DNA of 32,000 nucleotides from Wallemia ichthyophaga EXF-994. Lineage: Eukaryota; Fungi; Basidiomycota. Of this stretch, positions 14,434-29,900 are shown piece by piece. A program made the position numbers and the translations under genes. Each line of letters starts with the position of its first letter. The stretch's first letter is position 1. Location: the NCBI RefSeq assembly GCF_000400465.1, contig NW_008806293.1:32601-64600 (forward strand), read 5' to 3'. The notes under the pieces are model-generated. The model was not told where the DNA came from. It did no database searches and was given only the letters and a program-made list of their open reading frames with translations.

Positions 14434-14457
14434 ATTATCATATGTATTATTATCCTT

Positions 14458-15578
14458 TTAATCGTTTTTAATCGAATTGGTTAGCGTAGCCCGTAGCGTG
14501 TTGGAAAATATGTCGACTGTGTCGTCCTCGTTGAGCGTGATAGGTGGTGTGCGTGAGAAGCCAACACCTGCCGGGGTGCCTGTCCAAAGGAGCGAGCCGG
14601 GCTCGAGGGTGGTGCCCTGAGAGAGGAATGCAATTGTCTCAGCGAGGGAGAAAATTTGCTTGCTAAGGGAATGCTAGTGAGTTTGATATGTTGATACATT
14701 CACTGTAAACGTACCTAGTTGAGCCATTTTGTAACACATTACCATTAACTCTCGCACCTAGGTGCACATTATCTGCATCTATGCTTTGTGCACTAACGAG
14801 ACATGGACCCCATGGAGCACTCCCGTCAAAGGACTTACTGAATCCCCATTGACTAGTAGCGCCCTGGTGTCTGCGTACACTAACATCATTTCCCAGACTG
14901 TAACCTAGCACATGATTGAGAGCGTCACCAACAGTGACATTCTTAGCTGGTGTGCCAATCACCGCAACAAACTCGGCTTCGTAGTCCACTTTGAACTTGG
15001 AAGACGGCTGCGAGACGCGTGGAATAGGGATAACGTCATTTGGACCACTCAGCGCCGTTGAGGGTTTGTAGAATAAGATTGGGGCTTTAGGGAGCTGCAT
15101 ACCACACTCTTCCTGTATGCGGATTTAGTGGAATGGTCGCCAGTATGTCATACACACCGCATGGTCTCTATAATCTGAAATATAGTTATGAATGAAAAGT
15201 GATGAGGATTGGCTACCTACTCAGGCCGAGAAAGCGTGATGTCACAACCTCATTTGAAGCTATTGGTGATAACAGTTGTGAGACTGTCTTAACTTCGCCT
15301 GTGTGTCGGGTGGCGGTGAGAGCGGATCGTGTATCGAGAGTTTCTGCCTGGATGTGAGATTCTGTGCCAACTGAATTGATATGGAGTGATATTGGTGGGT
15401 GAAAATTTAACTGCTAAAAACCCACCATCGATATTTGAGAGTAGTGGCTCGCCGATGTAAATACGACCGTCTTCTTTAGCGGTGAAACGAATTAGGCGAT
15501 TCCATTGCTGTGTAGGTAATTCGTTGGTGTCAAGTATTTTAGCTACCAAAATCTCACTCTTATCGCGCTTTTACTCAT
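14458..15578 (-). CDS. Fumarylacetoacetate hydrolase-family protein
   Basis: Spliced MSKSAIRQWNRLIRFTAKEDGRIYIGEP...GLNYRDHAEECGMQLPKAPILFYKP...VDYEAEFVAVIG...NDVSVR...FSKSFDGSAPWGP...FLSQGTTLEPGSLLWTGTPAGVG...KND*. Includes a 17-nt exon at 15174-15158. Confidence 0.9.
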
Positions 15579-16621: not shown

Positions 16622-19353
16622 CTATTCACCGGATTCTGCATTGCCATCTTCCTCCGCCACTTCTTCAGCATATTCGGCTCTACGCTTTAATTTTTTTGAC
16701 TTCTTACCCTGTTTAGCACCCCCTTTACCCTTCTTCGCTGGCGCCTCTTTGTCCTGATAGCGCAGACTACTGCTCCACTCCATTGCCCAATTGTCGTATT
16801 CAATTGACATTTCTGTAGACAGAATGCGTCGTGCAACCGTTTGGACTGGCTGTTTATCAGAGATGAATCCATGTAATTTCATTACTTGCATCATATCACC
16901 CTCAGTGATGCGATTCGGACGTCCCATCTGCTCAGCTCCATCCGTCAACGCCTCGATATACTCCATGCACCGCTCCATCAACACCTCCTCCGTTCCCTTC
17001 TCAATTGCTAGCTTTGGGCCTGAACGATTCTGATTCATGAACCTTTCAAAGTGTTTCTTTATCAGCGTTTGTGTGATGTTAGGTAAACGCCTTCTGACGC
17101 CCCTGGCCTTGGCGTTTGTGCTGCGTGATTTACCGGTGTTTCTTTGTCCCTTAAAATTGGATTGTGTGATTGTGCTGTGTGTTGTTAGTCAGAAAAGTAC
17201 GGGGGTGTGAGTGACCCACACGTCAGGATCTTCGCCGTTTTCCTCATTCTCATCCTCCTTTTGCTTGCGTAAGAGCGGGTCAAGAATTAGATCTTCTTCG
17301 TCAGCTTCAGCTTCATCGTCCACAGATTTGGAGCGTGGCCTTATAGCCATAGAGTCGTCGGCAACGTTACCACGCTTCTCGACATTATTATCATCAGCTT
17401 CAACTTGGGCTTCTGGCTCGGCTAAATTCCAGTCATCTTTTGGTAGATCTTCGCCCGGCTGCATAACTTCGTCTTCCTCCCATGCATCGTCTGCTTCTTC
17501 TCCGCCCTCAGCCACCTCAGCATCAATCATGTCGTTCGTAGGTAGCATATCGACCAGGTCTTCTACAGGCTCCTCTTCGGCTATATCCTCGCCTTCTGGC
17601 TGCTCGCCAGGATTCATGACTGATGATCTGTCCTGATCACCCCTTCCACGATCGCTTTCATTATCGGCTGGTATCTCATTCTCGAAAGGAACCTCACCCT
17701 CGATTGGTTTGGGTTCCCCAAATTGATCGGGATCTTCATCTTGTGCATCTTCAATAGCAGGTGAGCTATCCTGATTGTTTTTTTCATCTTCTATCGCCGC
17801 TGAAGACCTATCCTGAGTGTCTCTTTCACGTGGACTTTGATAAAAAATTGATGATCTATCTTGGGACATTCTTTCGCGCTGGCTTTCATTCAGAATTGAA
17901 GATCTGTCTTGAATATCTTTTTCGTGTGGACTTTCATTTATAATTGAAGACCTCTCCTGTGTGTCTCTATTTTGTGGACTTTGATTGAGAAGTGAGAATC
18001 TATCGCGAGCACTAGGAGCATTTTCACTCCCGTCCGACTCTCGAGGACGTTTACTACCTCTACTACTTCTGCTACTGAGCAAACTTGAGTTACTCTTGTC
18101 AGATAAACTCTCATTAGGGCGAGAGCTCTGAGGCGATACCTTTTGCCTTTCTAAGGATTGATCGGAATGAGGGCTTTGAGAGGGGTGTTGACTGAGGCTT
18201 TTTTCGGTAGAATCCCTATCATATTCCGTTGAATGAGGTCTAGATTCCGAAAGCCGTGCACTTTCGATGGACGATCTCCTCTCTTCTCTGCTATTGGATC
18301 TCATGGATTCCTTTGAGCTGTTTGTCAGTAAATCATCTTGAGTGCTATTGCTCCTCTGCTCAGTCAACTCATTTTCATTATTATCATCGAGCAATATGTC
18401 ATCACCATCGACCTCATCCAGCATAACAGGTGGCTGTCTTTGAGCCAAGCTCGACTCATTACCTATTTCCAGAGTTTTATCATCTCCATAGAAGAAGCTG
18501 CTTTTATCAATTTGAGCAGACTTTCTTGTTGAAGTGTTATCTAGATGTAAAGATGGGTCATCCATCAGGCTATCACCACTATTTAGCTGGATAGAGTCAT
18601 CTTTCATATCTGCGCCTAAACCCATACCAAAACTAGATCTATTGACCATACTGAGTCTGAAGTCGGCTGGAGCACGTTCACGTCGAGCCAATTCAGGAGC
18701 TTCTGTATCGTCAAAAGCAGAGGTATTTGATGGTGAGCGTGAGATTGGGCGGTGTTGTTGCCAATACTCATTGACGCTTACAGGACTTTCAATAGTGACG
18801 ATTGAAGCAGGGGAGTCAGTTAGAGAGTGAGGAGTTGGCGGTGGTGGCATAGAAGTTCTCTTAATACCTCTGTATGCAGAGGATCGCCTTACAGTTGGAG
18901 GAATGTTAGGAGAAGATTGCTGAGGGGTGTGTGAGGATTGAGCGGATTGAGCAGATTGAGGTGGATGACGAAATGATGTTGATTGACGGCGTGAAGTTGG
19001 AGTTTGTTGAGTTTGTGCGGGTAATTCGACTGGTGGTGACGGTTTTGGTACACCGGGAGCTATAAAGTGGTTAGAGGGATATTATTGGTTGTTATTGATA
19101 TACCTTTGGTCAGCATTCTTAGTAAGTTTCGCGGAGTTTCACGATCGGAAGTTGAATTGAAGTTTGATTCAACGCGAATTGGAGTTTGTTGAGCGCGAGT
19201 TGGTGGTAAAATACGCGTACCACGTGGTGTACGACGCGAAGGAGTTGGAGGCTGAGATTCTCTAGCCCTGTTTGGCGTTGGAATTGGCGGATAATTCTTC
19301 CTTTTATTTGGCGTCGTCATGAGGGTAAGTTGATAAGGATTTTTGTTGGACAT
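16622..19353 (-). CDS. CENPT: CENP-T/Cnp20-like inner kinetochore protein (long disordered N-terminus, C-terminal histone-fold-like domain)
   Basis: Intron 19103-19060 and a second intron near 17175-17219 join ORFs 19060..19353, 17189..18850 and 16622..17038. N-terminal ETPRNLLRMLTK resembles the CENP-T TPRxLL motif. C-terminal LPNITQTLIKKHFERF...ITEGDMMQVMKLHGFISDKQPVQTVARRILSTEM resembles the CENP-T histone fold. Matched from memory, no HMM run. Confidence 0.65.
17801..18004 (-). repeat. Degenerate 48-nt (16-aa) coding tandem repeat, about 4.25 copies
   Basis: Units start at 18004, 17956, 17908, 17860 and 17812: DRFSLLNQSPQNRDTQ / ERSSIINESPHEKDIQ / DRSSILNESQRERMSQ / DRSSIFYQSPRERDTQ / DRSS. 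Confidence 0.9.
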
Positions 19354-19437
19354 AAAAGGTATAGTAATTAATAATTATACAATCTGACTTAATTTATTGA
19401 ACGCTTGTTTTATTGTTTGTTATTTGGTCTGAGTTCT

Positions 19438-20062
19438 CTATTTATCCATTGTATATTGAAGATTTTCATCATTTTCAGATTGAACACCACAATCACAATC
19501 AAAATGATTTGATAGAGTGGTGCAATCAAATTGAGGCTTTTCTAGCCTTTGATTTACTAAATTATGCATATTGCACAACCAATCAGAGGCAGCTTTGTTT
19601 GAGGATGTCTGTGAGTGTAGATATTAAGTGAGAGGCAATGAATTTCAAATATATAACAACCTGAGGTGGAAACTTGAGTAGAATGTTTTGAAAGTGTTGA
19701 CTACATTCCTCGCAGGGATATAGCTCACTAAACAGGTAAAAGAATTGGGAAAGCTTCTGAGATTGATCTGGAGTTGGATTCTAATAAGCCAGTTAGAAAA
19801 TCAATAACATCCTCACAACTCCATCAAACCTCGGGAAATTTAAAAGTCAAGTTATGGAGGAATTTCCAAGTTGAGTGGCCTAGTTCAGCTCTATAGATGT
19901 GTTAAAGATCTTTTATTGGAATTTACTTGAAACTAACTTGTAGCTCTTGTAATTTGAAGATAAAAGATTGACTTTGAAGGGTTTTATTGAGTGTATTAAT
20001 ATTATAGTAAAGCTTATTATTATAAAAGATGTCAATGCTATCAATTTTCTAATCAAATTCAT
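19438..20062 (-). CDS. ERV2: FAD-linked sulfhydryl oxidase Erv2 (Erv1/ALR family), N-terminal membrane anchor
   Basis: Four exons give MNLIRKLIALTSFIIISFTIILIH...KAELGHSTWKFLHNLTFKFPENPTPDQSQKLSQFFYLFSELYPCEECSQHFQNILLKFPPQTSSNKAASDWLCNMHNLVNQRLEKPQFDCTTLSNHFDCGCG...MDK*. It has the CxxC active site and the C-terminal CGC typical of Erv2. Confidence 0.92.
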
Positions 20063-20108
20063 TCCTTTATTCTCCGAACCCGCTAACGACTTAACCACCA
20101 TCGCATAA

Positions 20109-20826
20109 ATGATCTCAGCCGCATTACAAAGATCAAAATTTAGTTTAAATTTACAGCCATTTAAAAGGCTCTACTCAAATAAGCAAACTGTACCACAAAA
20201 AACTACGCACGATGAACAAATCAAAGAGCACAGAGAATCAGGCTTAACAACTCCACATCCACCAAAGGACGTTTTGACAGCTGAAGTTATATCAGGCGCT
20301 CCAGGTTGGTTATTTTAGACTTTTCATTTTACTTGAATGTTGATAATTCGCTTAGAAACACTTCAACATCGCCAAGTTAGAATTTATAAGCCAACGAAGA
20401 ATACTATGCAATCTGGTACTCACAATACGCATCACTGGAGAGTAGATTTTGATATTTTACAAGGTGGTGGTAGATGGGAGCATCCTTTGATGGGCTGGTC
20501 TTCATCGTGAGTTTGATTTGGTTATCACAGAACTCAACTAAAGTTATTATAGAGCTGATCATATGCAAGGAACAAACGTCAAATTCCAATCAAAGGAAGA
20601 TGCCATCAACTTTTGTGAGAAGCAAGGTGAGTAAGATGAATATAATCCCCCCATTCTAACAAGAAACAGGCTGGGATTACTTTGTTTCAAAACCACGTTC
20701 CCCAAAGTTTAAAACAAAGCAATACGCTGCAAACTATTACCACTGTGAGTTGACTGCCTTGGTTGATATCTCCAAGCTAACAATCCCAAAGCACCTGGAA
20801 AGTTACGCTTAGCTCAGACAAAGTAA
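20109..20826 (+). CDS. NDUFS4: NADH:ubiquinone oxidoreductase subunit NDUFS4 (21 kDa Fe-S protein 4), mitochondrial
   Basis: Basic presequence, then AEVISGAP/ETLQHRQVRIYKPTKNTMQSG...WRVDFDIL...RWEHPLMGWSSS/ADHMQG...FQSKEDAINFCEKQ/GWDY...KQYAANY...PGKLRLAQTK* across four short introns. Confidence 0.93.
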
Positions 20827-20960
20827 ACGCGTTTAAACGCGTAGAATCGCGTCAATCAAGTAAAACGAATTAAAACTTTTATTCCAAATCCATTCAATTT
20901 CTTTATTTGTAAATTTATCCACGCGTGTCCAATCACTTTCTATTTTCATTATCAACCGTC

Positions 20961-23904
20961 ATGTCGATTTTGAGTACTTCACCTGCAAAATCATTCTTAA
21001 GCAGAAAAAAGCATTCTTCGCAGCCAGATATACATATATCGCAGCAACCAACACAACAATTCTACACCTCCAACGATATCAACACCAAGGACTTCTGTAA
21101 CTCATTTTGGGGAGTAGATAGTAACGGATATGGATTTGATACTCTTACAAATAAACTAAAGTCTTCTTCAAAAACTGTTGATGATCTTAAGTTATTTTGG
21201 AAGGAAAGGTCGGCAATTGAGGACGAATACGCCAGAAAAATGGCAAAATTATCGCGATTTTTGGTTGGAACTGGTGAAACTGGAGCAGTTAGAGATAGCC
21301 TCGATACTCTCAGTACGGAACTCGAGCAAACATCACAGAATCATTTCAATCTTTGTCAAACTATCCATAGGGACTTGGAGAGACCAACGAATGAATGGTC
21401 TATTCGTTTATCCAATTTAAAGAAGAGCTCCCTTGCGACTATTGAAAAGAAGTACAAAGTTCTCCAAACTCAAGAAAGTTATGTTGATAAGGTCCGTCTT
21501 GTTTCCTCTTTTATGCAATCAACTCATTTTTTCCTCAGGCTAAAGCTAAATATACTGACAATTGCGTTTCTATCAACACTTTCACCGCACAAAAGTCTCT
21601 CTTACAAGGCAAAGACCTTGATAGAGTTGACGTTAAACTCGAGAAAGCTAAAAGTGTTGTTGGCGCTAATGAGCGTGACTATCAAAACTTTGTTAAAGCC
21701 CTTTCTGATACTCGTAAGCGTTGGGAAGCTGACTGGCGTATGTTTTGCGATCTATGCCAGGATGAAGAAGAAGAGAGGATAGAATTCTTAAAGTCAAATA
21801 TGTGGTCATACGCTAATGAAGTTTCAACCGTGTGTGTTGCAGACGATGAAGTGAGTTTATTTCGTTGGTTTACATTCTAACTGACGTCCGTTAGTCGTGC
21901 GAGAAACTTAGACAATCTCTTGAACAAGTTGACCCCGAGCTGGATGTTGAATTCTTTGTTGATGAGAGTATGACTGGCAACATTCTTCCAAGTCAGTTAT
22001 GTTCTAGTACAAACAGAATACTTGCTCACAAACATACAGACCAACCTACTTTTATTGATTTCTCACGTGAAACTCAAGTTCCATCACCCGCTCCTAGGTA
22101 CGCTACCTTCCATAGGAACAGCATTCGTCCGCTCGATATGCCTAGGGACTCACACCGCCCATTACAATCTCACAATCAACCACCTAAGCATGAGGTTCTC
22201 GATCATCCACCTCCATCATCTCCAAAGAAGCAAGTCGTTCAAGAGGAACCCAAACTTCAAAAGTCTCAACCAAAAGAGTCTTCTCATGATGAAAACGCAC
22301 CTTTCAAAGTACCTCAACTTCCTGCTCGTAATATCGATCGACCACCTCCGACTAAAGTCGAACCACCTTCATTTGATACTGCTTCCGCGCCTCAAACAGC
22401 TCCAAAGTTTGACGAAGCTCCACCTAGACCGGAAAAGGAGGACAAAGTTGAAACAAAAAAAGAATCAGGGGATGTGGATGAACTTGCCGCCGCTCTTGCT
22501 CAACTTAGAAACGCTCCTCCAGCAACGGGTAACCTTCGCGCCAATGTCGCAGCACAGGCGGAGAAGAAGCCACGTTCACGACCTGTATCACAGCATTCAG
22601 CTGTATCACCTGGTCCACAGGTAGGAGCGCCGGCGGGACAACAGGTATCTCCTACTAAAACTCAGCAACAGCCTCAACGACCTCCATTCAACCCTCAGAA
22701 TCCAATCTATCAAGGGATGGACGCCTCACAAATCCAGGCACTTCAAATTCAACATAAGTATGCACCTCACACCACCCCTCCTTTCCCTGCCATGATGCAG
22801 CGTCCAACGTCGAGCCAATCTAATGCGGGCGGACCCGTTGAAGACGTGATGACAACGTACCATCAACAGCTGCCCCACGAAAGAAGTCATCGAAATTCGC
22901 GTTTGGATCAGACTCAGCAAACTCAACAGCACATCTCCAGACCTCCCTCATCGACGGGTAGATCACCATCAAGAGAAGGCTTTGCAGGTATTGGCGCTGG
23001 CGGTGGTTTTGGTGCTAGTTACGGTAGCAGACAGCCTTCTCCAGCTGTCAGCAATGCATCACCGGTCCGTGCCGCAACCCCCCTAGGTATAAGTTTAAAT
23101 GCATCTGGAGAGGTAGCACACGATCAAAAAGCGGAGGAGTACAGGAAGAGACGTTCTGTTTCACCAGCGCTTGCACCTGCACCATCTGCTACTCCTGCAC
23201 CTGCTAACACACTCGCCAATCAACAGCAGCAGATGCAGATGCAACAGCAGCATCAGGCTCAGGCATACTATCAGTACCAAATGATGATGGCTCAACAGGC
23301 TCAGCAAGGCCAAGGTCAAGGCCAGCAACAACAACCACAGCATCCTTATCAGCCATACCAGTATTATCCATATGGACAGCCACAACAACAACCATACGTT
23401 ATGACGACGACACCAGGACCTGGATACAACCCATACCCACCAAGCAGTACGCCGGCACCAGCGCCTACCCCTGCTCCGAGTGGCCCAATTATGAATGCCC
23501 AACAGCAACATCGAGCACCCTCCCCATCTCCAACGCCTATATACAATGGAACACCGGGGCCACATCAACACCAGCAAAACCAGCAAACACCTTTTATTCC
23601 ACAAATTCAAACGCAGCAACTCTCTCACACGCCACAAATACACAGCGCCACAAATACATCAATGTATAGACAACACTCACCTTCGCCGCTTGCCAGTCCT
23701 AGCAAGGAACCTATCCTCTTCCATGTCAAAGCACTGTACGACTATGCAGCACAGACGACCGAAGAGTTTGATTTCAAGGCAGGCGACGTGATTGCTGTTA
23801 CAAAGACACCCGAAGACGGGTGGTGGACCGGACAGCTTACTGATGAGGCTCGATGCCTCCCTGGAAAAACTCTCTTTCCTTCTAATTTCGTCTCTTTGTT
23901 TTGA
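20961..23904 (+). CDS. F-BAR/SH3 (PCH family) cytokinesis protein, Cdc15/Hof1/Imp2-like
   Basis: FCNSFWG...GFDTL...KERSAIEDEYARKMAKL F-BAR start, ERIEFLKSNMWSYANEVSTVCVADDESCE, a Pro/Gln-rich middle and a C-terminal SH3 (VKALYDYAAQTTEEFDFKAGDVIAV...DGWWTG...LFPSNFV). Two introns. Confidence 0.9.
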
Positions 23905-24306
23905 TTATAAATTTCTTTGTGTATTAGTATATATTCTCTTGTTCATCTCAGTTTGCAGGATCAGCGGTTGATAATGTGATTTAGAACTTCTTAGCACTAT
24001 ACATGATTTAATGACTGCTCTAGAAAAGGACAAAGGGCCGCAAACGCGCTCCATCAATGCTTCTAATTTCATCTTGCCGGTTAACAAAGAAATTCCACAG
24101 GAAGAAGAAGCCATTCGGTCCTTATATGTAAAATGAAATCAGGAAAAATTCTGTATGCCAAAAAGAAATGTAAATCAAGCAATGGTAATGAACCATGTGA
24201 GCTGGAATGTGACTCAAGTGCATGGTCTAATTATACCCAAATACTGCTACTAGTTTGAGTCGTGTAAACACCTAACTCACGCTTTAACAGCATTTTAGAC
24301 AATGCA

Positions 24307-25237
24307 TTTCTCCTGAACGAACAACATTCACGCCTTAATACTTTGAAGTATTGAAAATACTTCCATCTTTTCTGCTTCTTTGCTTTACAAGCCAATCTTT
24401 AGCCACTAGTCTGAAACTCACAAGATTTGCTTAACTGCTCATTCTGCAATGAAAGATATTGTTCACAGGCATCATCAACGAAATATTAAAAATAATGGGA
24501 TATATGTATGTGAGTGATATAGCTGACGATAATTGATGCTACAAATTCACACCCTAGTCAAACTGTACTAGTGCTACCAAAGAATTTGCTACCAAATCCA
24601 ACTTTAGGTGTGTTAAGTTCCGGACTTTTGCTCGAGGAATTGCTTTTACATCGAATATAAAAGATGAAACATAATAATTTAGTTTGTTTACAGTAGTGAG
24701 ACTGTCGTACCTTGGAGATATACAATGTGAAAACATTCTCGGAGGTTTGGCCAAGAATGCGGCGAGGGAGAAAATAAGGAGAAAACCTCAAGATGCGTAG
24801 ATGAATTTCATGAAGTGGGGGGTGTTTAAAGGATGCTTCAAAAGTGAACGAGTAGAAATTCTGGTCAAAGAAAGGATATTAAGTCTTGCAGAGTAACGAA
24901 AGCACCGGTGTGACGTGAACAATGTTTACTTAGATGATTGAATGAAAGAAATTTAAGGGTAAAGTACGCCAGTGACTACTTAGTATTGAAGCTCTCAGAA
25001 TTGCACTATACCGCAAGAGGGATAACATAGAAAAGCCCAACACTTGGACAGTTGTAACTCTGATGACATAAATTGAAGGCGAAAATGGAAATTGATCGAC
25101 AGTTGATACTAGAACTGGAAAAGAAGCAAATCTACTCTAAAGATAAGAAGGCCGTCGTGTCACTATTGACATCTAAGGAGCGTTAAAGATGTTATTATTA
25201 TGCAAAACAAATCGAAGACGAGATCTAAACATTTGTA
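24307..25237 (+). repeat. Left arm of a 931-bp perfect inverted repeat
   Basis: Line-by-line comparison shows it is the exact reverse complement of 26364-27294; paired coordinates always sum to 51601. Confidence 0.97.
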
Positions 25238-26363
25238 GTGAAAAAAGTCGTATAAATTAAGCATTCGCGCGAACTATTGTAAACTCAAGTTAAAATAAAA
25301 CATATCAATGTTTGCATTTCGGTTGAGCTAAATTCGATAAGCATGCCTTTTCCATCATAACAAAGTTATAGCCATAGGTGCCTCTCTCAGATTTCAAACT
25401 ACTAAGTTTAACACTTTGTACAAACACAACTGTTTTACCAAGATAAGGACTCAGTAATCGTAAAATAGGTTATGATTGTAGTTCAGAATTTAACTAAAGA
25501 ACATTTTTACCTATGGTATTTCAAATGTATCAGAAGCGACTAAAACTATCTTTAAGCCAAAGAAAAAAAATGAACAATTTGACAACAAGAAAAGCAAGGT
25601 TTTGGCAGCATACATCTATAAAGTTTAAAAGAAAAATTTGGACGCAAAATTCAAATAGTTTAACTGTTAATTCGAAATTTGTCAAAAGGGAAATAAAAGT
25701 TCCGTTGGATCGATCATGATTAGGAGACTCAATTAGGAGCGATATTAAACAATATGGCCTTCAATTCCATCTAAAATGCTAATAGGACCCCTACTGCTGA
25801 TTAACTGCCATGAATGTGCTTGCCAGCTTCTGTTTCCTTGATATGATCGTGGTTATCAAATTTGGAAAATGAATGCCTTAGACATCGTGATTCAATCTAA
25901 TTGCCACTTGTAGTCACAAAAGAGTGACTTCGTAAATATCAAATGAGAATGACGAAATGATATTTACGAAAGCCAGTTTTAGCCGTAAGCTTCTATTTTA
26001 GAATTTCACTGCTCATTCCATTTAGGGTCGACATTATGAAGAATGCAAAAAAAATCGAATATGTAGAATGAAGGGGTTTCTGAGGTCTTAAACATGGCTC
26101 TGGCTAAGTCTCAATTAGTGAACCTTAATGTTGTACATTAAAAAATTAAAACTTTTAGAGACATTAATTAAAAAGTATCACTTCCCGTCTGTGTAGTTTT
26201 TTTTCCTGTCTGGGCCTTCTTGTGATGAAAATGAAGAATCATGATTTAAATTTATCATAGCTTGTCTTCTAATGTAAAAGCAATCCAGACCTCGATATAA
26301 GTGTCCCTACAACATGCGATTCTCATAGCTCACGCGAATGCTTAATCTATTCGACTTTTTCAT
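25238..26363. other. 1126-bp unique AT-rich core between the inverted arms; candidate centromere core or invertible segment
   Basis: Hand count 363 G+C in 25261-26340 (about 34%), versus about 47% in a sampled CEF1 line. No credible spliced gene found. The function is inferred from architecture only. Confidence 0.55.
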
Positions 26364-27294
26364 TACAAATGTTTAGATCTCGTCTTCGATTTGTTTTGCA
26401 TAATAATAACATCTTTAACGCTCCTTAGATGTCAATAGTGACACGACGGCCTTCTTATCTTTAGAGTAGATTTGCTTCTTTTCCAGTTCTAGTATCAACT
26501 GTCGATCAATTTCCATTTTCGCCTTCAATTTATGTCATCAGAGTTACAACTGTCCAAGTGTTGGGCTTTTCTATGTTATCCCTCTTGCGGTATAGTGCAA
26601 TTCTGAGAGCTTCAATACTAAGTAGTCACTGGCGTACTTTACCCTTAAATTTCTTTCATTCAATCATCTAAGTAAACATTGTTCACGTCACACCGGTGCT
26701 TTCGTTACTCTGCAAGACTTAATATCCTTTCTTTGACCAGAATTTCTACTCGTTCACTTTTGAAGCATCCTTTAAACACCCCCCACTTCATGAAATTCAT
26801 CTACGCATCTTGAGGTTTTCTCCTTATTTTCTCCCTCGCCGCATTCTTGGCCAAACCTCCGAGAATGTTTTCACATTGTATATCTCCAAGGTACGACAGT
26901 CTCACTACTGTAAACAAACTAAATTATTATGTTTCATCTTTTATATTCGATGTAAAAGCAATTCCTCGAGCAAAAGTCCGGAACTTAACACACCTAAAGT
27001 TGGATTTGGTAGCAAATTCTTTGGTAGCACTAGTACAGTTTGACTAGGGTGTGAATTTGTAGCATCAATTATCGTCAGCTATATCACTCACATACATATA
27101 TCCCATTATTTTTAATATTTCGTTGATGATGCCTGTGAACAATATCTTTCATTGCAGAATGAGCAGTTAAGCAAATCTTGTGAGTTTCAGACTAGTGGCT
27201 AAAGATTGGCTTGTAAAGCAAAGAAGCAGAAAAGATGGAAGTATTTTCAATACTTCAAAGTATTAAGGCGTGAATGTTGTTCGTTCAGGAGAAA
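26364..27294 (-). repeat. Right arm of a 931-bp perfect inverted repeat
   Basis: Exact reverse complement of 24307-25237. The ORF track also shows mirror-identical short ORFs (24554..24754/26847..27047 and 24558..24791/26810..27043). Confidence 0.97.
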
Positions 27295-28389
27295 GGCGTT
27301 GTCGGAATTGAGATGAAAGTAGTTGGCTTTTTTCAGCAATTCAGAATGTTTTAATTTAAGTTGTAAAGAATCGGGTCAAGGTGGAGTTGGTTGCGTGCCA
27401 AGCGTCTTCCAGTAAGTGATGGATGTCGCATTCCCCGCTTTCTTTTCGCTAATGCGTTGGATTATATATTTCTAGTTCGTACCTCCGATCTTTATATCTA
27501 GCATTGTAATTATTCATGTTTAAGGTTGAGGCTAAGTGGTTCTCCCTCCCCATTATTTTTCAGCTCACACTACCCACCAATATAAACATTTCAAAGAGTC
27601 GCTGCATTGCAGTTCTGATCAATAAAATGAATCACGTAGAGCAAGGATTTATTTAAACTGGTGTAATCAAGGTAAGAACGACGTGAAATGCTCTTGATAC
27701 GACCGACCCACAGCATCTAATTCCTGAAATATTTGTCATCGTATTGTATAGGGAAAATTACAGACTCCTTTGGCCTAATGAATTAGGTACATTTAAAAGC
27801 TTATGATCGACCCGATATACCCTCGATTGAGTGCTTCAAAGTGATGCTGGACCGTAAACTCCGTTCAGCTTGAAGGGTGTGAATAAATTCGACAGGCTCC
27901 GCAACTGGGGGTGGTTTTACGTCTCCACCAGAGCAACCCTAAACATGTTCGTTGGAGACTTCCATAAGTCGCAAATCATCCATTAGAGCTTAAGCAAGTG
28001 TATTAGATAATACAATTTGGAGGATTTTGGGGAGATATACGTTTTAAAAGCTTATTCTTAGTCCCGTAGAGCTGATAGGGATGACGGTGTCACAAGATTG
28101 TCATTCTCTAAAAACACTGCGCTCGCCTTAGCGCTTACTTCGCCATTTTGCAGCGTAAATAGTGCAACATAAACCAAGAAGCCATTTGATACTGCATTAG
28201 ATAACCCATGATGATGGACTTAGCATTTCAAATACCCTGCTATCTCATCATGTCGACCTGAGGTCATCAGTGATACGGGGCAAATGTTTTATTTTAGTGG
28301 TTAGGGATGTGAAGCAAGATAACATGTTACGGCGAATTATTTACATTACTGAAGCCGATCAGGGATTCGTGTTTCCCGACAATCAAGTG

Positions 28390-29900
28390 ATGAATTTACC
28401 AGAAGGAATTTTGGGTCTATTTGTAACGTCTTTTGAGCCTGGCGTTGGTAACAGCATTATTTGGAAATACAAAAATCCCTGTAAGCTACATGCTGACTTA
28501 ATATCACCCACTAATCAGCTCCAGCCAATGACGAGGACCCAGAGATGGATGGGGTGGAGTACACCTCTATGCCATCTGGAATGCATTTGATGAACTCCGA
28601 CGAGATATATTTCACTACGGAAGGCGACAACCATGGAATTGCTATCTATAGAAAGATACCTTCAGCCGATCAACATGAGCGTGGTGTTAAGATGTTTTCA
28701 GTCGGGGTGATCACGAGAGGCACTTACACACCATATGATTACTTACCGGAACTAGAGGAACTCTCTCTATATTTACTGACAAACCGCCCGTCCGATGTTC
28801 TGCTTGAGATGTTTTTTGCTCCAATACAATCATCTGACAATGATCACATTACCCAGCAATCACCATCACCTAAAGCACTTTCGCTGCTTTTCGATGTACT
28901 TGGCCCGCTGCTGCTTCTGCTGTTCAGATTGCTGCTTGCACAAAAGCGAGTAGTGATATTTTTTCGCCCTACCGAAGGAAAAGGAGTTGGATGGATTAGC
29001 GCAGCTTTAAAATCTTTCTCCGAAATTCTCAACAATGATGATGATGGACTTATCAGTGAATCTAGAACTCGCTATATTGGTAATGTTGGTTTGACCGATT
29101 TAGAGCGTTTGGAGAGTGTAAAGCGTGGCTATATAGCATGTGAGTAGTACGACAGTTTAAATTATCACTAATGCGGTTTCTTAGCTACCACCGACGCGTT
29201 GTTATTGGAGAAGCCCCAGGTATATGACGCAATTATAGATTTATCACCCAAAGTCAAATACCCCTCCCTATACATATCACAAACACATGAAAAGGGCGCG
29301 TTACTTACTAGGCAGACCTACACGCTTGCTGATTTAAACCTCTGGAGGAAGCTGAGAAGTAGAATTGATTCTCAAACTCTCGTTTCTTCACCGCCTTATG
29401 GGTTTGCGGACCTCTTTGCGGATATATGGAGCTCTATCTTTGGGGCCAATAGCAAAATGAGTATACCATCGCCAACACCGAGTGAATATTACCCAGAAAA
29501 CGAACCAAACACAAATGAAGATGACGAAGTCAGACTTTTAAGGAAGAGCCTCAACCCGTCACCTGCTATAGCAGCTTTCATGAAGAACTATTCTAATGCG
29601 ATTCTTGCTAGTTTACTCGCGTTGGCACTAAAGCCAGATTATGACCACAATGAAAACGTTAGAGATGAAGATCACCATCAAATAGACGGTGACAATGTTA
29701 TCAACGATGATAGACCGCTTGAGCTGTCAGCAGCAGATCTACTGACGCTTGGGTTGTCACCACTTAGTGATGTCGATAGTCTAGTGGCTAAGACAATATC
29801 AAAGACGGAATTGGGAAGGAGTGCAACCGTCTCGGTCAGTTGTGCTTGGTCTGTAGCTTCCTTTGTACGTCGCCAATTCTTAAGTATTGGCTGGATATAG
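28390..29900 (+). CDS. DUF2347/DUF4484 DENN-like protein (Anr2/DENND11-like)
   Basis: MNLPEGILGLFVTSFEPGVGNSIIW...DGVEYTSMPSGMHLMNSDEIYF...ERGVKMFSVGVI...GYIASTTDALLLEKPQVYD. Two short introns join the track ORFs. Confidence 0.78.

Follow-up and report, generated by a model that had tools for sequence, protein, structure and literature searches.

An inverted repeat between imp2 and DENND11 of Wallemia ichthyophaga

A large inverted repeat with a unique core was found in a window of 32,000 nucleotides, i.e., the whole stretch of DNA analysed here, to which all positions refer unless stated otherwise. The window matches scaffold KE007243.1 of the halophilic basidiomycete Wallemia ichthyophaga EXF-994 with 100% identity and contains no Ns; altogether, the sequence covered amounts to about 41 kb of this one 186-kb scaffold. 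The repeat sits inside a gap of 4,485 bp, between positions 23904 and 28390, in which the EXF-994 annotation places no gene. On its left lies the gene for an imp2-like septation protein, whose end faces the repeat, and on its right a DENND11-like gene, which starts 1 kb away from it (Table 1). Nearby intergenic gaps are all smaller than 0.8 kb. The G+C content is 33 to 37% in the repeat and the gap compared to 42% across the window; the genome was reported to be ~74% coding, with 45% G+C (PMC3849046).

As shown in Table 1, each arm of the repeat has a perfect interior and decayed edges. At the pairing x + y = 51601, 931 of the 931 positions of 24307-25237 are complementary to 27294-26364; neighbouring pairing registers gave about 250 matches in 931 positions. 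A repeat search extended the arms to 24282-25245 and 26356-27319, which are 964 nt long, 99% complementary, and 1110 nt apart. A preliminary description of this DNA, made from the sequence alone, had claimed 931-bp arms with zero mismatches and an inward extension of the homology by 40 bp with five substitutions and one indel (25238-25277 versus 26325-26363). Both claims were borne out by the alignment. The inner-edge homology can be traced to about 25291/26311 (50 nt, 80% identity), with a local-alignment score of 52 compared to a maximum of 21 for shuffled sequences.

The same description had reported that the homology continues outward for 9 bp with two substitutions. This extension, with the substitutions at 24303 and 24306, is present, but taken alone it is within chance (score 11, with a shuffle mean of 11.1). 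Continued without gaps to 24282, the outer extension shows 16 matches in 25 positions; when position pairs were drawn at random from this region, no more than 0.02% did as well. With this null frequency of 0.0002, the outer decayed edge is therefore real and longer than first described. The homology at the outer ends fades across about 25 bp, and the divergence of the edges is 15% on the inner and 36% on the outer side. Local alignment against shuffles revealed no residual palindromy beyond the edges, neither towards the middle of the core nor farther into the flanks. Target-site duplications were not detected either; the flanks of 24281/27320 and of 24297/27304 share no direct repeat. The arms contain no internal repeats of at least 12 bp beyond chance, and the core is likewise free of sub-repeats. 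No further copy of the arm exists elsewhere in the window, and an arm 30-mer gave no match among the metagenome contigs of JGI.

Table 1. Features of the imp2-DENND11 interval of W. ichthyophaga EXF-994 and positions at which flank contigs of other strains end
Feature	Position	Strand	Remark
Left flanking gene, imp2-like septation protein (FCH + SH3)	20961..23904	+	annotated, 934 aa
Left spacer, unique, non-coding, 377 bp, 3' flank of imp2	23905..24281		no annotated gene
Outer decayed edge, left arm	24282..24306		pairs with 27295-27319; 16/25 complementary
Left arm, 931 bp	24307..25237	+	perfectly complementary to right arm
Inner decayed edge, left arm	25238..25291		pairs with 26311-26363
Unique core, 33% G+C, non-coding	25292..26310		segment that an inter-arm crossover could invert
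Inner decayed edge, right arm	26311..26363		alignment to left inner edge
Right arm, 931 bp	26364..27294	-	perfectly complementary to left arm
Outer decayed edge, right arm	27295..27319		16/25 complementary to 24282-24306
Right spacer, unique, about 1.07 kb, upstream region of DENND11	27320..28389		homology to W. hederae ends at 28379
Right flanking gene, DENND11-like (PF09804)	28390..29900	+	EXF-994 annotation, 473 aa
Left-flank contigs of SPOG, SPNX, SPOC, SPOL	end 24425		identity begins at 24307
Right-flank contigs of SPNZ, SPNX, SPOR, SPOE, SPOM	end 27176		identity begins at 27294
Contigs of SPOB	left end 24461, right end 27140		identity begins at 24343 / 27258
Contigs of SPOI	left end 24028, right end 27185		identity would begin at 24298 / 27303

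Coding and RNA content of the repeat

The inverted repeat of W. ichthyophaga is non-coding. No open reading frame (ORF) that starts in it exceeds 77 amino acids, and its longest stop-free stretch comprises 106 codons. Within the core, no ORF is longer than 68 amino acids and no Rfam match was obtained at E<=1. A tRNA scan and Rfam searches of the whole repeat, at the gathering score as well as at E<=1, returned nothing. Translation with genetic code 4 yielded no longer frame and no coding signal in the repeat, and the CpG and TpA ratios were negative as a sign of coding or RNA content. Ten ORFs of the repeat were looked up as exact sequences in a collection of 15 billion proteins; none was present, with the limit that ORFs starting with TTG or GTG are possibly translated differently there. 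Searches of the gap by tblastn and blastn for relics of the genes that neighbour the locus in related species were likewise negative.

A mitochondrial origin of the repeat was rejected on the absence of long code-4 ORFs, tRNA, and rRNA. A mutation bias resembling that of repeat-induced point mutation was also rejected, as the TpA ratio is not raised.

Junctions of the repeat in other strains

Assemblies of 21 further W. ichthyophaga genomes were made with IDBA-Hybrid at a maximum k of 120 (PMC6738226). In a k = 120 graph, a flank contig is expected to run 119 bases (k-1) past the last difference between the arms. Contigs of the other strains never cross an arm, and the repeat junctions are seen from flank contigs only. 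In most strains, the end of these contigs lies precisely 119 bp beyond the edge of the perfect arm (Table 1), and the last bases of a left contig are the reverse complement of those of a right contig. At least the outermost 119 bp are therefore truly identical between the two arms in most strains. Wherever a flank was readable, the most divergent strain included, the outer junction is unchanged and the repeat is inverted relative to both flanks. Since the k-1 stops mark the same junctions across strains, the repeat predates the common ancestor of the sampled strains.

The boundary of arm identity shifts between strains. In SPOB, both contigs extend 36 bp further than those of most strains, and the right arm carries private single-nucleotide polymorphisms (SNPs) at 27259, 27290, and 27291, i.e., in its outermost 36 bp, which are absent from the left arm of the same strain; identity is likewise shown for 119 bp beyond 24342. 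The right contig of SPOI, which is the most divergent of the strains, ends 9 bp sooner, implying identity out to 24298/27303. At position 24303, EXF-994 and SPOL have a T, whereas SPOG, SPNX, SPOC, and SPOB have the right-arm base, C. The presence of the partner-arm base in several strains is compatible with conversion and also with a plain SNP.

The three private substitutions of SPOB fall within 33 bp, whereas the adjoining 1 kb has a single private SNP. Such clustering suggests one patchy event of repair or conversion, for which a diverged sequence may have been the donor, and not three separate mutations.

The left spacer together with the outer edge (23905-24306) occurs in two haplotypes, one in EXF-994 and SPOL and the other in SPOG, SPNX, SPOC, and SPOB. 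They are distinguished by SNPs at 23982, 24131, 24239, and 24262 in the left spacer and at 24303 in the outer edge. Their divergence is about 1.2% (5 SNPs in about 400 bp), compared to 0.05% in neighbouring genes.

Arm identity and age of the duplication

In the right spacer, 14 segregating sites were found in 1,017 bp among eight strains, corresponding to a nucleotide diversity (pi) of 0.45% with a maximum pairwise difference of 1.08%; the diversity of the adjoining genes is 0.05%. Edges that have diverged by 15% and 36%, next to a spacer pi of 0.45%, point to a duplication far older than the diversity of the species. This result, together with the identical junctions in all strains read, agrees with the preliminary description, which had proposed an old repeat rather than a recent duplication. 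If the arms had evolved independently since the ancestor of the strains, about 4 to 10 differences per 931 bp would be predicted, and none is observed in the reference; the probability of finding no arm difference is about 0.015 to 0.0001. The old edges, the moving boundary, and the shortage of arm differences together thus favour repeated arm-to-arm gene conversion with erosion of the edges.

We consider it probable that the repeat is a non-coding inverted duplication, with arms of ~960 bp and a unique core of 1.0 to 1.1 kb, that homogenises itself by arm-to-arm gene conversion; that conversion is the cause of the arm identity is what we infer from the features just described. Intrachromosomal recombination between the arms, in the form of non-crossover gene conversion, would repeatedly overwrite one arm with the other, and the interior would thereby stay identical. 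Conversion tracts would need homology on both sides and would seldom reach the last tens of bases, so that the edges would gather differences. The zone of identity would creep inward and would now and then be pushed back outward. Resolution as a crossover would invert the core and leave the flanking genes unaffected, and we infer that the core may flip in this way between the 0.9-kb inverted arms. Linkage disequilibrium in W. ichthyophaga decays at about 1.3 kb (PMC6738226); since the species thus recombines, the recombination machinery is not in doubt.

Several points weigh against homogenisation by gene conversion. The expected number of arm differences presupposes that selection constrains the arms no more than the spacer beside them. 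In the other strains, each arm is visible for its outer 119 to 155 bp only; the variants there are all arm-specific (SPOB right arm), and no change common to both arms of one strain was found in this visible part. The zero-mismatch interior is read from one SOAPdenovo assembly with K=21. SOAPdenovo merges bubbles and may emit one consensus for both arms. As two near-identical arms would pass one graph node at this K, the lack of mismatches may partly represent a collapsed consensus written twice. The orientation of the core in the reference hangs on the 2-kb library alone. The left contig of SPOI (GCA_004918755.1) ends at 24028, which is 124 bp past the imp2 stop codon and 254 bp before the left arm; a mixed culture, or a structural variant in the spacer, may account for this early stop. 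Finally, a third arm copy elsewhere in the genome could have served as donor, and the close spacing of the three SPOB SNPs would be in keeping with one patchy event. The view of the preliminary description that the interior is being homogenised is accordingly supported in part, by the deficit of arm differences and the moving edge; the interior identity is that of a K=21 assembly, in which a few arm-specific variants may be hidden, and changes shared by both arms of a strain were not seen.

An account without ongoing homogenisation would hold that the arms are about 99% similar, that their perfection results from de Bruijn collapse or bubble merging, and that the step in divergence is exaggerated. 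The EXF-994 reference was indeed built by SOAPdenovo with K=21 from short reads only, namely a 500-bp and a 2-kb Illumina library (PMC3849046). In Komagataella phaffii, misassembly of inverted repeats has been documented, at any rate for core orientation (PMC5010909), and SPOB carries arm-specific SNPs. We nevertheless regard this account as unlikely. In most strains, the k = 120 contigs end precisely 119 bp beyond the edge, on both flanks where both were seen, and even on this account homogenisation at some time would be needed to explain why divergence drops from 15 to 36% at the edges to no more than about 1% in the interior.

Position of the repeat relative to conserved gene blocks

The genes to the left of the repeat (OTU, eIF3-zeta, HDAC, FAA hydrolase, Snf7, CENP-T-like, NDUS4, and imp2) form a block whose order is common to Wallemia mellicola, in which compact genes, among them zf-U1 and a Zn-cluster factor, follow directly after imp2. 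The order of the block to the right (DENND11, ERG6, NUDIX, Pam16, and further genes) is common to W. mellicola and Wallemia hederae. DENND11 is preceded by DOP1 in W. mellicola and by an RG-rich ORF and alcohol dehydrogenase (ADH)-like ORFs in the sister species W. hederae. The nucleotide homology of the window to W. hederae stops at 28379. Judged by this gene order, the repeat-bearing gap falls exactly where two conserved synteny blocks meet.

Within 10 kb, no inverted repeat and no gene desert was found on either flank in W. mellicola or on the DENND11 flank in W. hederae, which was compared on this flank only. No part of the 4.5-kb gap aligns to the flanks of the relatives, and the origin of the repeat is therefore not traceable. 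On the flanks compared, the repeat is specific to W. ichthyophaga, and it is located at an evolutionary rearrangement breakpoint.

The upstream neighbours of DENND11 differ in the three Wallemia species, being the repeat and imp2 in W. ichthyophaga, the RG-rich and ADH-like ORFs in W. hederae, and DOP1 in W. mellicola; this boundary has therefore been broken more than once. The ADH-like ORFs of W. hederae (positions 14443-15424 of that locus) are two adjacent minus-strand ORFs of 140 and 184 amino acids that were assigned to the alcohol dehydrogenase type by eye; they lie upstream of DENND11 in a stretch without a called gene.

Less likely explanations: mobile element, centromere, or chimeric scaffold

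The location of the repeat at a breakpoint bears on a further explanation, namely that it is what remains of a mobile element bounded by long terminal inverted repeats (TIRs), such as a foldback-like or non-autonomous DNA transposon, that was inserted at this site or mediated the rearrangement, the arm identity then reflecting a fairly recent insertion. Such an origin would fit the inverted-repeat layout with its non-coding centre, the restriction to one species, and the position at the breakpoint. In addition, about 85 kb of DNA transposons were reported for the genome (PMC3849046), and the clustered SNPs in the SPOB arm could derive from a diverged extra copy. We judge this origin to be decidedly unlikely, however: a target-site duplication is missing at every plausible boundary, no transposase or other ORF is present, and the arms lack the sub-repeats that are typical of foldback elements. 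Moreover, the ends fade instead of being sharp, a second copy was not found in the window, and the junctions are alike in every strain with a readable flank, so that there is no insertion polymorphism.

The preliminary description had pointed to the centromeres of K. phaffii. The locus might thus be a small inverted-repeat centromere of the type found in K. phaffii, Candida tropicalis, or the imr-cc region of Schizosaccharomyces pombe, with a core and arms that would bind CENP-A and a repeat that would be kept for that role. A region free of annotated genes, holding an inverted repeat around a unique mid, is indeed what we found. The gap has 4.5 kb without a gene in a genome that is ~74% coding and is AT-rich (33 to 37% G+C, the window having 42% and the genome 45%), arms and mid consist of unique sequence on a scale similar to that in K. 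phaffii (PMC5010909), and the site coincides with a synteny breakpoint, where centromeres often occur. The position is not conserved, however, as the compared flanks of the relatives have neither a gene desert nor a repeat within 10 kb. For most yeast centromeres, the position is conserved. The analogy drawn in the preliminary description therefore failed where positional conservation in relatives was looked for, and the host of the repeat is a basidiomycete and not a Komagataella species. The region 19000-21500, which is largely an annotated gene, has a similar G+C content (35 to 37%), and the G+C trough is therefore not distinctive. In the literature library searched, there was no inverted-repeat centromere for any basidiomycete and no paper on centromeres, inverted repeats, or long-read assemblies of Wallemia.

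Taken together, a centromeric role appears improbable. It is more doubtful still that this locus represents the first inverted-repeat centromere of a basidiomycete, which would imply regional centromeres of 3 to 4 kb in a 9.6-Mb genome, with a unique core and homogenised arms of about 1 kb, that arose independently of the ascomycete cases and mark a rearrangement relative to W. hederae and W. mellicola.

That the two flanks are unlinked and were joined through a dispersed repeat into a chimeric scaffold, which would explain why the synteny break coincides with the repeat and why other assemblies never cross it, is extremely improbable, as the region contains no Ns, the core is unique and repeat-free, the 2-kb library spans the 964-bp arm, and a chimera would need more than two arm copies, two copies permitting two junction pairings that would both read imp2-arm-core-arm-DENND11 and differ in the orientation of the core.

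Flanking genes

The closest match of the imp2-like protein is a W. ichthyophaga protein with 97% identity; an exact look-up of the 644-amino-acid imp2 exon ORF of the window in the protein collection gave no record. The gene models of this region (20109-23904) conflict. NDUS4 (176 amino acids) and imp2 (934 amino acids) are separate in EXF-994, whereas the 2019 strain annotations have them fused as a single protein of 1047 or 965 amino acids; in W. mellicola annotations, DOP1 and DENND11 are likewise fused.

For the DENND11 exon at 28545-29147, a homology search gave no Wallemia protein from NCBI and just fragments from Logan/ENA with at most 86% identity, yet a DENND11 protein of 473 amino acids is annotated in EXF-994 at this site.

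A 48-nt unit is present in four tandem copies, 70 to 80% alike, at 17801-18004 within a gene of 869/880 amino acids. The W. mellicola orthologue of this gene has a CENP-T C-terminal domain, so that this tandem repeat is coding and located in a kinetochore protein.

Significance and comparison with known systems

The inverted repeat as such is confirmed, and its interpretation is supported in part. We regard the locus as a short palindrome without coding content, probably homogenised in its arms and situated at a breakpoint confined to this lineage, which is an element of a known kind that was not previously described in W. ichthyophaga. If this holds true, it would be a clean and very small natural case of palindrome identity kept by conversion with eroding edges, and the differences between strains in the start of the identity are already visible in public assemblies. 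As it is located at a species-specific synteny breakpoint, it is also relevant to the rearrangement history of this compact genome. For Wallemia genomics it is a warning, as every later short-read assembly checked breaks here and the orientation of the core in the reference is insecure. An inverted-repeat centromere in a basidiomycete would be the larger prize, which is unlikely to be won on the present evidence.

Like the centromeres of K. phaffii (PMC5010909), the Wallemia locus has a unique mid of ~1 kb between near-identical inverted arms, themselves of unique sequence, and is gene-free and slightly AT-rich. It differs from them in its arms of about 1 kb compared to 2 to 2.7 kb, in its basidiomycete host, and in the lack of a gene desert at the compared flanks of relatives. 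The mid of K. phaffii centromeres occurs in both orientations among isolates through recombination of the arms, and published assemblies had orientations wrong (PMC5010909); the remark of the preliminary description that core inversion is reported for these centromeres is thus correct as a statement of the literature. The imr-cc region of S. pombe and the centromeres of C. tropicalis are related inverted-repeat comparisons.

Foldback and other long-TIR transposons, such as FB and Galileo of Drosophila, consist of inverted arms on the kilobase scale around a short centre that is often non-coding, and they are tied to rearrangement breakpoints. In contrast to these elements, the Wallemia repeat shows no target-site duplication, sub-repeats, transposase remnant, sharp ends, or insertion polymorphism. 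In the breakpoint model developed for Drosophila, staggered breaks leave sharp-edged inverted duplications of a single-copy ancestral flank on the sides of an inverted segment, and no mobile element is needed. The Wallemia repeat is likewise an inverted duplication at an evolutionary breakpoint, but its edges are decayed and the gap cannot be aligned to the flanks of the relatives.

In the MAT flip-flop systems of Ogataea polymorpha and K. phaffii, inverted repeats of about 2 kb recombine and invert the segment between them (PMC5010909, PMC6738226). The putative MAT locus of W. ichthyophaga comprises other genes, namely STE3, HMG, BAP31, and CAF1 (PMC6738226). The segment of the methylotrophic yeasts carries MAT genes that are moved beside silencing chromatin, whereas the Wallemia core contains no gene that could be switched (no ORF of more than 68 amino acids and no RNA family).

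The palindromes of human and primate Y chromosomes and the inverted repeats of plastids have arms kept identical by gene conversion; these arms are 10 kb to more than 1 Mb in size and usually bear genes whose conservation is presumed to matter. In plastids, crossover between the repeats can invert the spacer, which is known as flip-flop. The Wallemia arms differ from these palindromes in their length of 1 kb and in that no gene or RNA was detected in them. They share with them an identity far higher than the age of the duplication would predict, a unique spacer, and a probable homogenisation confined to the region of homology.

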